A stretch of 62,977 nt of DNA, counting the filler, from Hyphochytrium catenoides (taxonomy: Eukaryota; Protista; Hyphochytriomycota): the NCBI GenBank assembly GCA_900088475.1. It is 16 parts of 16 records of this genome, joined end to end, with 100 filler letters (N's around TTAATTAATTAA, not from the genome) between each part and the next. Parts side by side here need not be neighbours in the genome. Positions count along the whole stretch, not along the records: positions 46,588 to 57,297 come from FLMG01000483.1; 15 more parts are not named here. One strand, 5' to 3'. The notes under the pieces were generated by a model. It saw only the letters and a list, made by a program, of their open reading frames with translations, ran no database searches and was not told where the DNA came from. Shown piece after piece: positions 50,688-57,610 of this stretch; position 1 is the first letter of the stretch; each line of letters begins with the position of its first letter. The translations under genes were made by a program, and so were the position numbers.

Positions 50688-52644
50688 TTAGCTCTCTATT
50701 GTCCCTGACTCTGTCTTCCGCCTCTTGGCGAATATGCTTTGAAGAACAGCGTCACTGGACGACCTCTTATCGCTAGTTTCTGGATCAGCTGCTGGGGCTT
50801 TCTGCTTGAATCTTTATCCGGTCGACAACAAGAAGAGCAAGAGGAGAGGAGCTGTCAGGATAGGAACAAAAGAAAGGAAAGGTACCTTGGGAGTTATCTA
50901 AAAAGAACAGCAAGAGGTGTCATAGCAAGTCTCTCCTAACCTTCTTCGGATCTCATTCCTCGCATCCTCGTCAGCTTTCTTGGTTCCTGGACTCTCAGTT
51001 CTTGTCCGTGCTTTCTGCAAGCGATAGACCGATGGGAACCATGGCTCGTGAATGCCTTCTATAGATCAAAAAGGGTGCAACGTCTCTCTTACCTTCCTCT
51101 CCTCCATTTTTGTGAGCTGCTTGGCCTTCTCGACCTGGTCGGCGTAGAACTGTGATTCTCTCTTAGCATGGGCTACCTCCAGCCGCAGCTTTTCCTGCTT
51201 CAGCTTGCTATCATATGCTGCAGCGGGGGTCAGAATGCAGGCAGAAAGAAGAAACTCAAGCTTGGGCTGTGAGCACTAGGAAACGTCAATGGATAGCTAA
51301 AAGATGTAGCAGTAAGCCTCTACCAGAGAGGTGATAGCTTAGCAGACTGAGTGAAAAACGACCTTGCCGCAGGGCCTACCTCTTAGAACAATCGATAGAG
51401 AGGGAAGAGAGAACTATAACCCCTGACAGGAAAAGGAGGCCGAATGGGACGGCAAGAGACAGGGACAAAAGTATTGAACGAGATGTACGGATATAGGTAA
51501 GGAACAGCAGTTTCCGCTGTTATAGCCATGATTCCCCTGCAGTTTACCTATCTTCTCGGTGAGATGAGCCCAAGTAAACTTGGGCAGGTACTTCATGAGC
51601 CAGACATCCTCATGGTAAAAGCTCCTCTTCTTGCCCCCTGGAATTTTGCCAAGTACACGGCAGCGATCAGTTTATGTGGGAACGGTATCACATCCCCCGG
51701 TGAAAGACCCATGAAAGCCCATGTTTGCCCATGGTTGGAAGACAGGATGAGGTAAACGAGGATAGGACCAAACCGTGCAAGCCACAGCAACGAGAGGCAC
51801 GCAGAGAGCGAGAGACAGACACAGCTGAGGACGAAGCAAAGAACGATCGCCGACTCGATAGAGGTCCCTGAGCGTAAGGTCGAAGCCTTACCGACTTTGG
51901 TGTTGTTCAACATGTCGGCCACGGACTTTGCCACTTTTCTGTCTAAGAACTCCACCCAGCCCTCCACATACTTCATCTTCTTGTTCCCTCCTGCTTGGAC
52001 TCTCCGCCGGTACTGAGTTTGATCTAACGGCCATAGAAGAGATAGGGTGCAATGAGGGAGGAGGAGAAGATGTGAGGAACGTGAACTAGTAAAAGGTAAA
52101 GACTACACAGGAGTCAGAAAGAGATGCTGCGAAGAGGAGCGAACGGAGTAGAAGGGCGAGGAAAGAAGATTGTGTATGGTGTGAGGGACCGCATAGCGAA
52201 GCATGGCAGTGCTGCTCTATGGATATATTGTGTCTCAACAGCAATCTATTGAAACGAAGGAGCCTCTCTGTCCCGGTCCAACTTCAGAACCGATGGAAAA
52301 TGGCGGAAGCCAACACAGATGGACAAGGCACACCAGAACTAGCGGCGCAATCCCGCTGAGCAAGAGAAAGCCTGACCTTCAGGAACCAAGTAGATCCGGT
52401 CTATATCTCCAAATTGGCCTAGCAGGTGTCGCACCTTCTCTGGCTTCATATAAGGCGGAATTGTGCTCAAATAGATCTGTGAACCGCCGGTCAGTCCTTA
52501 CGGGTTAGAGACGAAGTCATAAAGAATAGATAGACATACAATCCCTCTCTTCTTCTCGCCTTTTTGCTTCGACTTCTTGATCTTCTCTAGGTCTAGCGGC
52601 CTCGCTACCGGACCTTCGGTTTCTTTGTTCTCCTCCCTTGCCAT
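50688..52644 (-). CDS. ESF2: Pre-rRNA processing protein ESF2/ABT1, multi-exon
   Basis: KKRGI|IYLSTIPPYMKPEKVRHLLGQFGDIDRIYLVPE|D, YVEGWVEFLDRKVAK..LNNT, GGKKRSFYHEDVWLMKYLPKFTWAHLTEKI and LRLEVAHAKRE. Confidence 0.93.
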
Positions 52645-53284
52645 TCTTCTTGGTACTTCCAGCCTGGAAATCTTCAAAGAGCCCGCGTACCCCTATCTTC
52701 CCCCTTGACGCGCCACTAAAGTAGGGGCCAGGTACTGGTTGATGGGAGCTGACAGAGTCCGACCGGGACGCTAATCAAAGCGCTAAACAATACACAGCTG
52801 TCGGTCACCGGAAACTGGAGTGGATCTTGATGGCTTCAGAGGCAGAGAGCGATGATGATACGAGGAGCTGAGTGACTTATAGAGCGCTGCACGTGCTGCT
52901 CCTGCTCCTGCTGCTTCTGCCTCGTACTGCTGCTCTTGAGTCCTTGCTTCCCTGATGGCAAAGTCGCTTCCTCTTCCAGTTCAGCAGTCTGCAGCAGCAG
53001 CAGCTTCTCATCTTCTCATCATCCCAAGAAATGAATGGGTCCACTAACACAGGCATCGGCCCACCGGATAACGAATAAGCTCTCGCAAGCTTGCTTTTCT
53101 TCTGATTAACCAACAGATTTATTGAGGATTCTCATGGCTTGGACCATTGTGATGATCATATATTAGTTCATTTCTATGATTCTCGGCAGAACGTGCTTAA
53201 CAACGTGACGTGTCAAGTCCTTTGTTGCTCAAGCGGCGAAATTACGGATAATAGACCGACTAGTACCGAATCTAAAGCACCTTC

Positions 53285-56200
53285 ATGCGGTTAAGGATCT
53301 GGGCGACAGCCGTCAAAGGATTCTGGGTGCGGGTGTTACAGCCACCACCGCGCTGGCTTCACCTTGGCAAGCTTGCCACTCGATGTACGTCTCTGATTCT
53401 TGAGACGCTCAGACGAGCTCTGGACGTCAACTGCACAGCTCGAATATCACGGTCTCTAGCAGAAAATATGGTGGTGAAGACAGAAAAGAGCAAAGATGGC
53501 AAGATCTGGACCATCATCCTAAGCAGGTAACCCGTCCACGCCACCTTGCCATCAAGCCATCCTTAATGCTCGCCTTTAATAGGAAGGAAGTAAAGAACGC
53601 CGTCGACCGCTCAACTGCCGACGCTCTGGTGCAAGCCTTCACTGCTTTTGAAGATGACGCGGTGGCTCGGGTAGCAGTTCTCTACGGAGAGAATGGCACT
53701 TTCTGCACAGGTAGGAAGCTACTCCGGTGAAGCCTAGCCAGTAGTGTGACATCCTTTTAACGATGCTGCTCATTTCACAGGAGCTGATCTGAAGGCTATT
53801 TCCAAGGGCATTGACGCTGGAAATAGGTTGCAAGTAGGGATCCTTGACTTTTGTTCTACTGGCAGCTCATATGGAGTTCTGATTCTTTAGTGCTTACCTC
53901 CATACATCTGCGCGGGGGTCGTCGCAACAGTCTACACTGCAACTGGACCCGGGAAGCCAAAGCCGTGCTAACCTGACATTCTTCTGTCCTTGGGATAGGA
54001 TGTAGATATCGAGGCTTTTCCGATGGAGACAAAGGGGCCTATGGGTCCCACCCGACTTCTACTTTCTAAACCGGTCATTGCCGCTGTAGCGGGTTACGCA
54101 GTAGCCGGTGGCTTAGAGCTGGCTGCTTGGTGCGACCTCCGAGTAGTGGAAGAGGACGCTGTCCTTGGCGTCTTCTGCAGACGCTGGGGCGTTCCCCTGA
54201 TTGACGGTGGGACCGTTAGACTGCCCCGCTTGATTGGGCAAAGCCATGCGTTGGACCTTATTCTAACAGGAAGGCCTGTTCACGCTCCTGAGGCTCTTAG
54301 GATGGGCCTGGTTCGTAAGCATCACGTCTCATGAGGCACCAATGCTCTTCGTTGTCTTTGGAGTTATCTTCCCATGTTTTTCTTCTCGACACCTCGATTT
54401 TTGGCATTCCCCTTTCCCTCAACCGACCTACTGGCTTTGAAGCTTAAAAGCAAATGGTAGGCGAACAGAATAGTTTCAAAAGGTTCCGCCCGATTGGAAG
54501 CAGAGAAGCTAGCAGCAGAGATTGCCTCTTTTCCGTCGGATACCATGAAGCAGGTAGGGAGAAGAGACAACTTGAAACGATGCGACGAGAATCCGCCAGA
54601 GGGTTCAGCACAAGAGAAAGATTCGGAAGGGCCTAAAGGAAAGAAAGGTGTACGCATATACCTCACAGAGAAGAAGAAAATCATGCTGTATAGGAGCCGC
54701 GCCCTAAATGTTCCTGTGGGTGTCTCATAACGTCCACATTGGAGAGGACATGGAAGTCATAAATAGACGCCAAGACTGTCACGTCTAACGTTACGTTCTT
54801 AGGACCGCGTCTCTTCGATTGAGCAGTGGGATCTAACCCTTCCTGAGGCTCTAAGGAACGAGTTCAAGAGAGGAAAGGTTTCACTGCAGAAGAGCACTCT
54901 TGAAGGTAGGGCCATGGTTTGCCTTTGTTCACTTCGTGTTAGCCTTTGTTCACGTTGTGCAATATTCCCGTTTTACCTATTTGTCTCTTCTCACGCTTGA
55001 CTGACTGCTCTGCTTTCCATGAGTTGACCCCTCCTCTACGTTGCCTAGGAGCGGTAGCATTTACGCGGCGGAAACCGAATGGTCAAATATCTTCTTCGCC
55101 TACCGGTAACACACAGGCTGAAGGCGAAGAAAAGATATCCGCTGTGATGTTTGACTTGGGGGGTGTCCTCTTTGACTCTCCCCTGGAGCACATCAGAGAG
55201 TACGAGAAAGAGCTCGGTCTGCCAACGAACGCACTCAACAGACTTATTGCCTCAGCAGGGTCTCAGGTTAGTTCCAGAAAATGTGCTACGTGCTGCTTAC
55301 GTCTGAGTGCATGTTTGATGCTATGCTGGCCGCATTCTGCTTCCTCTACAAGTTCATATACCTTCCATGGAGCAGCCGCACTATTATCTTTCTTTTTCTT
55401 GGAACTCTTCCTATAAGTGTACTTCTGATCCTCTCTAGAACTATTCATTGTTTGAGGTTGCCCTCTCCCTATCTTTAGCTACATCGGCACATATCGTCCG
55501 GCCGCTAAACTCCTTCGGTGTAAATAGGGCCCTTTTCAACGAATGGAGAGAGGTGAACTGACAGTGGAAGAGTTTATCAGGGTTTTCGACAAGGAGTGCT
55601 TGAGTTCAGGTTAGAAGGGGTGGTACTCTGCCATTTCCCGCAGCCCCTAGTCCTTCCCTTTCTTTTTAATGCTGTTCCCTCTGTCCTTGTCTGTCTTTTC
55701 GCCTCTCGCAAGACTGACGGCGGCATCACATTTGTCATTTTGTCCCTCTCTTACATCCAAGTGACTCGATTAAGTTGTCCATATCATAGTTTTTGAAGGC
55801 GACTGTTGGCCCAGCTTCTACACAGTAACGTTGACTTCTCATACCAAAGGTTTCAAGGAGCCTCTGGTCGGGAGCTTATGCGCCGTGTGGGTGAAGCGTT
55901 GCGCCCTCGAGAGGCTTTTATCGAGGCTGTAGGACTGATCCGAGGATACGGCTTCAAGACAGCTGCAGTTACCAACAACTTCCTTGACGGGGGGAAAACT
56001 GATACAGTCATTGCACAGTCCATCGCACCGGTTATGTGAGTTCCCACTGTCTAGAAGCATTGGCTTGTGCGTGCTTAACGCTGTTACAGGGATAGAGTCG
56101 TCGAGAGCGCCAAATGTGGACTGAGGAAACCAGATCCGGCGATTTTTGATCTGGCTTGTCGTCAGCTGGGTGTAAAGCCCAGTCAAACCGTTTTCCTTGA

Positions 56201-56414
56201 TGATATAGGAGAAAACCTAAAGGTGAGCGTTATCTAACTCTAATTCTAAAGAGAAGCGCTGACTTATATGGGTTTCCTGCAGAGTGCACGGCGACTGGGT
56301 ATGAAGACTATCAAAGTTGACGCAAACGATGTCAAGGGCATCAACGCCTTAGGCAAGCTGGAACAAGTACTAGGAGTGAAGCTCCTTGATCTTCTCAAAA
56401 AGGCTCGGCTATAA
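53285..56414 (+). CDS. Fusion protein: enoyl-CoA hydratase/crotonase plus HAD-IA phosphatase (ACAD10/sEH N-terminal type), C-terminal PTS1 (ARL)
   Basis: About 11 GT-AG exons, with the start at 53468 or in-frame 53285. ECH motifs: KNAVD, FCT|GADLK, KPVIAAVAGYAVAGGLELA, CRRWGVPLIDGGTVRLPRLIG. The exon at 55049-55267 carries the ECH end (GAVAF), a linker and HAD motif I (FDLGGVL) in one frame. TNN, KPDPAIF and FLDD follow, ending LLKKARL*. Confidence 0.9.
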
Positions 56415-57610
56415 GCCTAGCAAGCAGTTAGACCCCAGCAAGCAGTTTAAGCCCAAGGATATTCCGCTGCAAACATCCAAACGCCAGGCCTTTCTTGTCC
56501 TCTCTGAGGCAGTCGGAAGCCTCATAAAGGAGGGAGCGACCACACACTCAGCTGTAGCTACCGTCTCACCGAGAGGCGGGAACAGGGATCCTGGTCAAGG
56601 AAACGAACAAGCTGAGGACTCTGCGCCCCAGACTTCGCCGGCTCCGCAGGCCGTTCGTCTTCCCATCATCGTCTCTGCTGCTGCTGCTGCTGCTTCTTCT
56701 TGGCTGGGACGGGGAAGAAGGAAGGCAAGGTGACGGTTGAAGCTGAGAAGCGAGGATCAGAACACCTGACATCTCTAACATAAGAGCAGAGCTGTCGGTA
56801 ATCGTCGTATTTGGTCGAAGTGGGGTTACGGTTGTTGTTACTTAGGTTACAGGCTATTTCTGCCCATGTTATCGTACAGTACAGTTTTACAGTACAGTTT
56901 ACTTCGTGTATGCCCCTTAGGGCCAGCCGAGACAAACCTTATTTTTCCGCATATCAGAATACACACAGAACGCTTCCTCTTTAGTCAAGGCATGGGTGGA
57001 AGCTTTAGAGCTTATATATTGGCCAAAGGGCGGGTGGGCGGATTAGCCTGGCAAGTGACTCGAAGGTGTTTCTGAAGGGCATGAGTATCATTCAGAATAT
57101 GAGCACCAAGTTAAGGTACAATTCATGATGGTCAGGCAGTAGTAATATCGTGTGCTCTACATGACTATCAGTTAAGCCTGTTGGCTGGGCGTCCGAGCGC
57201 GTATTACTGTGAGTTCTTTGAGGAAAATCCGTTGTTCGTTGTCTTGTGATTCTGAGGCTCGAAGGAAGGAGGGAGGGAGGGAGGGGGAGAGAGAGAGNNN
57301 NNNNNNNNNNNNNNNNNNNNNNNNNNNNNNNNNNNNNNNNNTTAATTAATTAANNNNNNNNNNNNNNNNNNNNNNNNNNNNNNNNNNNNNNNNNNNNATC
57401 CCCCAATATTAATTCAAAGTGCTCACCATCCAATGATAAAATCTAACATGGTGTACGCCCCGAGCGATTTAACTCGGGCAATATAGTGAGCCATTCGGTT
57501 CTGTGACCACGGATGACCATCACAGTTCTATTTGAATCTAGAGCTTACAGAGTTCTCTAGATCCTGTTGAATGTTCAGCTTCGACCCTTCACCTTAGGGA
57601 GTTCGAGCTG

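Follow-up and report, generated by a model that had tools for sequence, protein, structure and literature searches.

A crotonase and a HAD phosphatase domain in one gene

Does one gene of Hyphochytrium catenoides encode a crotonase (ECH) domain and a HAD-type phosphatase domain as a single protein, and what might such a protein do? The question arises at positions 53468-56414 (+ strand) of a 62,977-nucleotide stretch of this genome (assembly GCA_900088475.1; here called the window), which a preliminary description had read as a peroxisomal fusion enzyme. The analysis was confined to positions 46588-57297, a 10.7-kb piece of the window. Our results indicate that the locus is probably a single eukaryotic gene whose product, a bifunctional enzyme of the peroxisomal matrix, would use both domains in one lipid or acyl-CoA pathway.

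Coding blocks were identified by listing open reading frames (ORFs) and by direct reading, and were then joined into a splice model. The resulting 11-exon model encodes a protein of 496 amino acids without internal stop, and all introns are of the GT-AG type with lengths of 54-261 nt. Single exons served as queries in database searches, family scans and PDB searches, and the joined 496-residue sequence was used for local alignments only. Conservation was read from an alignment of 17 fused proteins. The features of the gene are as follows:

53468..56414, + strand: coding region of the ECH-HAD fusion, with stop codon TAA at 56412-56414; aligns end to end with the fused homologs P0058 and P0094 and shares its intron positions with the ortholog L081
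53468..53526, + strand: exon 1, beginning with the ATG start, MVVKTEKSKDGKIWTIILS; the start agrees with the N-termini of the stand-alone eukaryotic homologs P0153 and P0393
53583..53710, + strand: exon 2, N-terminal part of the ECH domain (NF006108 49.5 bits, ECH_1 26 bits)
53781..53833, + strand: exon 3, ECH domain (GADLKAISKG...), from the gene model; collinear with bacterial ECH proteins
53999..54310, + strand: exon 4, catalytic core of the ECH domain (NF006108 199.4 bits, ECH_1 66 bits; best PDB matches 3r9q, 3qka, 4z0m and 4qfe)
54116..54118, + strand: codon of Glu120 (GGLE), invariant in the 17 fused proteins, at the first crotonase catalytic Glu position
54176..54211, + strand: family signature CRRWGVPLIDGG, which includes Cys140; the fused family shows no variation at C, RR, GVPL and DGG
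54461..54553, + strand: exon 5, ECH domain (NF006108 28.2 bits)
54803..54905, + strand: exon 6, C-terminal helices of the ECH domain (NF006108 17 bits)
55049..55266, + strand: exon 7, the junction exon, with the ECH tail, the linker and the HAD N-terminus including motif I in a single open frame (TIGR02247 16.9 bits; best match P0001)
55075..55134, + strand: inter-domain linker PNGQISSSPTGNTQAEGEEK, of low complexity; the matching segment of P0094 has a predicted local distance difference test score (pLDDT) <50
55150..55167, + strand: HAD motif I, FDLGGV, with nucleophile Asp285 at 55153-55155 and Gly, not Asp, at the +2 position; D-L-G-G-V is invariant in the fused family
55528..55609, + strand: exon 8, HAD cap region (ERGELTVEEF...), from the gene model and alignment with P0058, P0094 and L081
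55858..56035, + strand: exon 9, end of the HAD cap and motif II (TNN at 55971-55979; T-N-N invariant; TIGR02247 16.4 bits); acceptor chosen by frame and homology
56090..56222, + strand: exon 10, HAD motif III (Lys422, 56127-56129) and motif IV (Asp446-Asp447, 56199-56204) (TIGR02247 62.1 bits, Pfam Hydrolase 28 bits; best PDB match the EPHX2 N-terminal domain)
56283..56414, + strand: exon 11, HAD C-terminus and stop, from the gene model; 62% identity to the L081 ortholog
56403..56411, + strand: type 1 signal for peroxisomal targeting (PTS1), Ala-Arg-Leu after Lys-Lys, read from the sequence; the ending [SAC][KR][LM] is shared by 18 of 21 fused relatives

The least certain splice sites are the donor of intron 4 (GTTCGT at 54311) and the acceptor of intron 8 (55857/55858), both of which were chosen by homology. 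An alternative splice between exons 8 and 9 (donor 55595, acceptor 55826) was rejected, as it would delete a conserved E-C-x-x-x-G segment.

The fusion is real and recurs in other protists

Exon 7 carries the last ECH residues (GAVAFTRRK), the low-complexity linker PNGQISSSPTGNTQAEGEEK and the HAD motif I (FDLGGV) in one frame; ~25 residues separate the two domains. This agrees with the preliminary description, except that the exon ends at 55266 and not at 55267. With the junction exon as query, HMMER found 128 matches among 1.84 billion representatives. Among these were full-length proteins in which the HAD domain starts at residues 272-335 (P0058, 508 aa; P0094, 553 aa), and several fragments consisting of crotonase tail, linker and DLGGV. 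Over ~500 residues, the 496-residue model can be aligned along its whole length with P0058 and P0094 (46-47% identity).

Could the locus nevertheless produce the ECH and HAD parts separately, the fusion being an artefact of the gene model? Separate products would require an internal promoter with a start at Met283 or termination within intron 6. Met283 does lie two residues ahead of Asp285, and some stand-alone HADs begin 3-5 residues before the nucleophile. However, ECH tail, linker and motif I share one exon and frame without a stop, and the same arrangement recurs elsewhere. P0094, P0130 and P0133 are each a single uninterrupted ORF on a genomic contig. Fused ORFs are also found in transcriptomes, with P0129 as a complete ORF and P0136 from the foraminiferan Nonionella stella. 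The junction exon is also conserved in a related species: P0001, the best match of exon 7, shows the junction layout in a single ORF, and L081, from another sequencing run, encodes an ortholog ~60% identical that has its introns at equal places, a junction exon that is likewise one ORF, and the C-terminus RKARL. Because fused ORFs occur on contigs and in transcriptomes, and because L081 shares the introns and the junction exon, an artefact appears very unlikely, and we consider separate products highly improbable. The earlier claim that the fusion is genuine is thus borne out.

This genome is not the only one with the fusion. When P0058 and a profile built from the 17 fused proteins were used in word-based searches, at least ~20 clusters bearing both ECH and HAD Pfam domains were found; these searches were not exhaustive, as the profile search missed four sequences of its own query alignment. 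None of the fused proteins found came from UniRef or nr, and none was named beyond 'enoyl-CoA hydratase'. The ESM Atlas contained no large cluster with the fused architecture, and literature searches found no paper on a crotonase-HAD fusion. The protein represents a new domain architecture made from known families; within the reach of these searches, it is rare and has no published description.

One candidate, P0124 (on contig L086), was discarded as a miscalled ORF bridging two genes. This long, frameshift-ridden contig (L086:6001-10369) carries in succession another crotonase, a HAD, a PRK08259-like ECH joined to CBS by miscalls, and a citrate-synthase-like gene. On a eukaryote-like metagenome contig (L085:5668-9725), the intronless P0133 has as neighbors a NUDIX gene and a fragmented acyl/acetyl-CoA synthetase-like gene, which may be coincidence.

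A complete EchA5-type crotonase domain lacking the second hydratase glutamate

Residues 1 to ~258 form a complete crotonase-fold domain of the EchA5/PRK08259 family. Pfam ECH_1 was matched in exons 2 and 4, and the best NCBIfam match of exons 2, 4, 5 and 6 was NF006108/PRK08259, at consecutive profile positions from 22 to 238. As the exons were scanned singly, the curated cut-off of NF006108 (273 bits) is comparable only with the sum of the exon scores (~294 bits). Residues 1-256 are collinear with whole bacterial PRK08259 proteins (59-67% identity), indicating that the crotonase half is complete and correctly spliced. The nearest solved structures to the ECH core by sequence are those of the mycobacterial EchA5-type proteins (3r9q, 3qka, 4z0m and 4qfe). 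Folds were compared using the fused homolog P0094 in place of the window protein; Foldseek superposed the P0094 ECH domain on 3r9q, 4z0m and 4qfe with a template modelling (TM) score of 0.94, a root-mean-square deviation of 1.7-2.3 Å and 54-56% identity. Profile, PDB and fold matches therefore all place the domain in PRK08259/EchA5, in keeping with the proposal that it belongs to a normally stand-alone subfamily, whose members are both bacterial and eukaryotic.

Exon 4 is 72-87% identical to bacterial proteins. Its protein identity with sequences of Myxococcota, Actinomycetota and Pseudomonadota (up to 87% for 53999-54310) is unusually high for a eukaryote-bacteria pair, and may reflect either extreme constraint or a fairly recent gene transfer.

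To locate the catalytic positions, we used the match of exon 4 (query 22-104) to rat enoyl-CoA hydratase (1dub_A, chain 97-179), two segments of equal length that were read as gap-free. Glu120 falls at chain position 115. With the catalytic residues of the rat enzyme taken to be Glu144 and Glu164, Glu120 would be the first catalytic Glu and Cys140 would occupy the position of the second. Of the two Glu residues of a canonical enoyl-CoA hydratase (EC 4.2.1.17), the protein thus has Glu120, with Cys140 in place of the other. Cys140 is invariant in the fused family. Simple hydratase activity is therefore not to be assumed, and isomerase-like or other thioester chemistry is possible.

A HAD domain of the EPHX2/ACAD10 type

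Residues ~279-496 make up a HAD domain that is complete and of type IA, with TIGR02247 as the best-matching subfamily. HAD families of Pfam were matched in exon 10, and TIGR02247 ('epoxide hydrolase N-terminal domain-like phosphatase') was the best NCBIfam match of exons 7, 9 and 10 at consecutive profile positions, with scores of 16.9, 16.4 and 62.1 bits; being single-exon pieces, these are not comparable with the 125-bit cut-off. The closest solved structure to the HAD part by sequence is the EPHX2 N-terminal domain, and the HAD domain of P0094 aligned by Foldseek with the N-terminal domain of soluble epoxide hydrolase over ~225 columns with 30-32% identity. All four HAD motifs are present (D285, T388, K422 and D446-D447, plus N451) and invariant in the 17 fused proteins. 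FDLGGVL, ERGE, TNN, KPDP, FLDD and CRRWGVPLIDGG were all found in the protein. The TIGR02247 and EPHX2 matches, together with the motifs it had named, uphold the assignment by the preliminary description to the HAD subtype of EPHX2 and ACAD10.

In the fused-family alignment, the invariant positions comprise the Glu of GGLE and C-RR-GVPL-DGG in the crotonase half, and D-L-G-G-V, TNN, K-P, DD and N in the HAD half. Judged from this alignment, neither domain varies at positions that serve catalysis in related enzymes. The AlphaFold model of P0094 shows two confident domains with a predicted TM score (pTM) of 0.49; residues 262-289, corresponding to the linker, have pLDDT <50. The linker between the ECH and HAD domains is thus predicted to be disordered.

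Motif I reads D-L-G-G, without the second Asp (DxG instead of DxD), in all fused proteins and stand-alone relatives examined. This raises the possibility that the HAD domain has no catalytic role and instead tunes the crotonase as a regulatory or ligand-sensing module, as proposed for the HAD domain of ACAD10, which would restrain the adjacent kinase. ACAD10 is reported likewise to retain only the first Asp of the DxD motif, its HAD domain to have negligible phosphatase activity on 4-phosphohydroxyacyl-CoA, and the D48A mutant to raise kinase output (PMC11342911). However, DxG is the usual form among the stand-alone HAD relatives examined, and nucleophile Asp, TNN, Lys, DD and Asn are all invariant. 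Moreover, a later preprint shows Mg2+-dependent lipid phosphatase activity for the HAD domains of C. elegans and human ACAD10. They act on 1-O-alkyl-2-acetyl-, 1-O-alkyl- and 1-acyl-glycerol-3-phosphates, lose this activity upon mutation of the nucleophile Asp, and have been likened to the EPHX2 lipid phosphatase (bioRxiv 10.1101/2025.09.10.675409). A purely regulatory HAD domain is therefore improbable, and we favor a catalytic role for this half of the bifunctional enzyme.

Predicted peroxisomal targeting of the fusion and of its separate partners

The protein ends in KKARL followed by TAA, and -ARL conforms to the PTS1 pattern [SAC][KRH][LM]. The PTS1 that the preliminary description had read from this terminus is present, and it is shared by relatives: an ending of the form [SAC][KR][LM] occurs in 18 of 21 fused proteins or fragments, compared to 8 of 185 stand-alone ECH matches. 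Of these eight, the four that were traced to their source are all eukaryotic (two come from a scallop and the amoebozoan Phalansterium, one from an MMETSP transcriptome, and the fourth is placed with the scallop protein by the ECH tree). A brittle-star ECH homolog, outside the length-limited set of 185, also ends in SKL. On the HAD side, a PTS1 ending is found in 8 of 30 complete-looking stand-alone representatives, including proteins of Chytriomyces and Lactarius.

As individual cases, the stand-alone ECH proteins P0208, P0220, P0393 and P0153 (scallop, brittle star, Phalansterium and MMETSP protist) end in -SKL or -AKL, as do the stand-alone TIGR02247-type HADs P0051 and P0105 (Chytriomyces and Lactarius; -AKL or -SKL). 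Both families thus seem to be widespread, unlisted peroxisomal proteins. Since some of its stand-alone members end in PTS1, each partner has a predicted peroxisomal location of its own in other eukaryotes, which is the pattern expected of a Rosetta-stone fusion of two co-located enzymes.

The frame of exon 1 is open upstream to an in-frame ATG at 53285 (53285-53467). A start at this position would add 61 residues, rich in Arg and with few acidic residues (MRLRIWATAVKGFWVRVLQPPPRW...). It was not adopted, as the N-termini of homologs agree with the ATG at 53468. The segment 53285-53467 could be 5' untranslated region, or it could provide an alternative start with a mitochondrial-type presequence and thereby dual targeting. 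The stand-alone ECH homologs P0208 and P0170 (scallop and related) combine a presequence-like N-terminus with -SKL.

A gene cluster with both families in a subset of bacteria

Are the two families also linked in bacteria? Gene neighborhoods were surveyed from both sides. Starting from the ECH gene, the 80 best bacterial loci contained no gene of the HAD, His_Phos, AGPS-like or CBS-citrate-synthase kind at a distance of up to 8 kb. Weak associations were seen with AidB-like acyl-CoA dehydrogenases (5 of 35 genera), SDRs (4 of 35) and TetR-like regulators; of the 80 loci, 28 had a FadE-like dehydrogenase and 22 a PaaX-like regulator within 5 kb of the ECH gene.

On the HAD side, a metagenome scan with the HAD alignment yielded 80 stand-alone HAD loci, apparently mostly bacterial, of which the 40 with at least 1.4 kb of downstream sequence were informative. 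A full-length ECH gene lies 0.6-1.3 kb downstream of the HAD gene on the same strand in 7 of these 40 loci (L099, L106, L114, L139, L143, L145 and L147; GC content 0.69-0.75). A bacterial link was thus seen from the HAD side (7 of 40 loci with ECH) and not from the ECH side (0 of 80 with HAD). The ECH proteins of the seven loci are 52-59% identical to the window ECH domain. In L106, the ECH scores 403 bits against NF006108 (cut-off 273) and the HAD 179 bits against TIGR02247. The seven loci are mutually diverged, with identities to L106 of 56-65% for HAD and 63-79% for ECH. A His_Phos_1 phosphatase (~207 aa) is encoded between HAD and ECH in six of the seven, not being detected in L145, and in L099, L106 and L143 its stop codon overlaps the start of ECH. 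L099 and L106, the two loci with enough sequence, have a FAD-linked oxidase gene upstream. The best solved relatives of this protein are alkyl-dihydroxyacetonephosphate (alkyl-DHAP) synthases (2uuu, 3e-68; 4bby, 8e-61), followed by D-lactate dehydrogenase (1e-31). L106 and L143 also encode a CBS-plus-citrate-synthase-like protein downstream, and in L157 such a gene immediately follows HAD. Other neighbors of HAD genes include further crotonases (four additional loci), CoA-transferase III (5 loci) and NUDIX (4 loci). Two of the clusters are arranged as follows:

L106:6253-11618 and L099:4009-8317, one strand each: AGPS-like FAD oxidase, TIGR02247 HAD, His_Phos_1 and PRK08259 ECH; in L106 also the CBS-plus-citrate-synthase-like protein

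Taken by itself, the L106/L099 cluster has the look of an uncharacterised operon. If the PRK08259 crotonase is roughly single-copy per genome, as we assume, we estimate that seven adjacent cases in 40 loci are far above chance.

These data bear on a further alternative, namely that two unrelated peroxisomal enzymes were fused for convenience, sharing one promoter and one PTS1 while acting in different pathways. Such a fusion would be in line with the occurrence of both partners as separate PTS1 proteins in other eukaryotes, with the predicted disorder of the linker and the pTM of 0.49, which give no fixed domain interface, and with the absence of a HAD gene near most bacterial ECH genes. It does not readily explain the same-strand HAD, His_Phos, ECH order with overlapping stop and start codons in seven diverged loci, a frequency well beyond chance under the single-copy assumption. 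Nor does it account for the retention of the fusion among relatives only ~46% identical, with active-site-type residues invariant in both domains. Although somewhat less improbable than a purely regulatory HAD domain, a fusion of convenience is unlikely. Separate PTS1 partners in eukaryotes and a HAD, His_Phos, PRK08259-ECH cluster in a subset of bacteria instead favor the Rosetta-stone reading put forward in the preliminary description.

Proposed function

In the reading we prefer, a bifunctional peroxisomal matrix enzyme, PEX5 would import the protein via -ARL. The crotonase domain would bind acyl-CoA and work through the oxyanion hole and the single conserved Glu120, and may isomerise or otherwise transform the thioester instead of simply hydrating it, considering that the second hydratase Glu is an invariant Cys. 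The HAD domain would use Asp285, Thr388, Lys422 and Asp446/447 together with Mg2+ to dephosphorylate a lipid-like or acyl-CoA-derived phosphoester, in parallel to the lipid-phosphate phosphatase activity reported for the HAD domains of EPHX2 and ACAD10. Both activities may belong to one peroxisomal lipid pathway, because the partners are fused in several protist lineages, separately PTS1-tagged elsewhere and located in one apparent operon in some bacteria. Our best guess for this pathway is a fatty-acyl side branch, either ether-lipid or acyl/alkyl-glycerone-phosphate turnover or the handling of phosphorylated hydroxy-acyl compounds. Eukaryotes carry out the first steps of ether-lipid synthesis, that of alkyl-DHAP synthase among them, in peroxisomes, which makes the AGPS-like bacterial neighbor suggestive.

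Several observations weigh against this proposal. The general acid/base Asp of HAD motif I is absent, and the ACAD10 HAD domain, for which one study found negligible activity on 4-phosphohydroxyacyl-CoA, has been proposed to be regulatory (PMC11342911). Knockout of EchA5 in M. tuberculosis causes no significant growth or infection defect, and EchA5 has no assigned substrate (PMC3220763). The peroxisomal location of the window protein is predicted, and peroxisomes are assumed to be present in the organism. In the ECH tree, the fused proteins fall into several weakly supported groups, which does not separate a single from a multiple origin. As to bacteria, the neighbors of the 80 ECH loci are not conserved and include none of the genes of the cluster, the HAD-ECH operon link is confined to a minority of bacteria, the AGPS-like adjacency was found in two related loci only, and the gene order is reversed, with HAD first in bacteria and ECH first in the fusion.

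A more far-reaching idea, which we regard as tentative, is that EchA5-type crotonase and TIGR02247 HAD constitute a conserved, unrecognised module: a bacterial operon with a histidine phosphatase and an AGPS-like enzyme, two PTS1 proteins in many eukaryotes, and a fusion in several protist lineages. The module might act in peroxisomal ether-lipid or acyl/alkyl-glycerone-phosphate turnover or in the handling of phosphorylated acyl-CoA. If true, this would provide a function for EchA5 and a physiological context for the phosphatase domains of EPHX2 and ACAD10. Both halves come from large families, and the EPHX2/ACAD10 HAD type has been tied to lipid phosphates only recently. The PTS1 fusion, the separate PTS1 partners in fungi, amoebozoans and marine invertebrates, and the AGPS-bearing bacterial cluster suggest a pathway common to both partners and offer candidates for assay. 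The fusion also adds an unlisted enzyme to the predicted peroxisomal proteomes of protists, including foraminifera.

Other features of the genomic piece

In a gene for a PP2C protein phosphatase (Pfam PP2C 163 bits), a large exon at 49788-50540 (+ strand) accounts for the C-terminal two thirds of the protein, whose best database relatives, from oomycetes and plants, are only 43-46% identical. GA-rich microsatellite arrays at 47627-47684 and 48019-48148 flank an assembly gap (N run at ~47.6-47.7 kb). An 18-nt unit, TAAGCCCAGCAAGCAGTT, is repeated 2.4 times at 56412-56455, from the stop codon of the fusion gene into the presumed 3' untranslated region. An Rfam scan of the genomic piece 46588-57297 gave no match.

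Comparison with known systems

EPHX2 partly localizes to peroxisomes via a weak PTS1. Its N-terminal lipid-phosphate phosphatase belongs to the same TIGR02247 subfamily and is the best structural match to the HAD domain by both sequence and fold. In EPHX2, however, the HAD domain is N-terminal, is joined to an alpha/beta-hydrolase epoxide hydrolase and has DxD in motif I, whereas in the window protein it is C-terminal, is joined to a crotonase and has DxG; no Abhydrolase match was found by Pfam in any exon of the fusion gene. An EPHX2-like architecture was seen in P0119. ACAD10 (HAD, APH kinase and acyl-CoA dehydrogenase) resembles the fusion in that a similar HAD type is joined to an acyl-CoA-handling enzyme. 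It differs in the partner, a kinase and an acyl-CoA dehydrogenase instead of a crotonase, and in being mitochondrial, while the window protein carries a PTS1; ACAD11 is peroxisomal and is devoid of a HAD domain. No exon gave a Pfam match to an APH-type kinase or an acyl-CoA dehydrogenase.

EHHADH/MFE1 and plant MFP2, which were among the weaker PDB matches, are likewise peroxisomal proteins in which a crotonase is joined to another enzyme. This other enzyme is a 3-hydroxyacyl-CoA dehydrogenase, a domain not present in the window protein, and their crotonase belongs to another subfamily with both catalytic Glu residues. In the bacterial cluster (L106, L099, L143 and others), the two families of the fusion are adjacent on one strand, but as separate genes with HAD first and a histidine phosphatase in between, and in a minority of the bacteria bearing either gene. 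The closest counterpart of the crotonase half is EchA5 (Rv0675)/NF006108 (4z0m, 3qka, 3r9q and 4qfe), which it resembles in collinearity, in the CRRWGVPLIDGG signature and, via P0094, in fold. To the stand-alone bacterial PRK08259 protein of ~256-280 residues, the window protein adds a C-terminal HAD domain, a PTS1 and introns.

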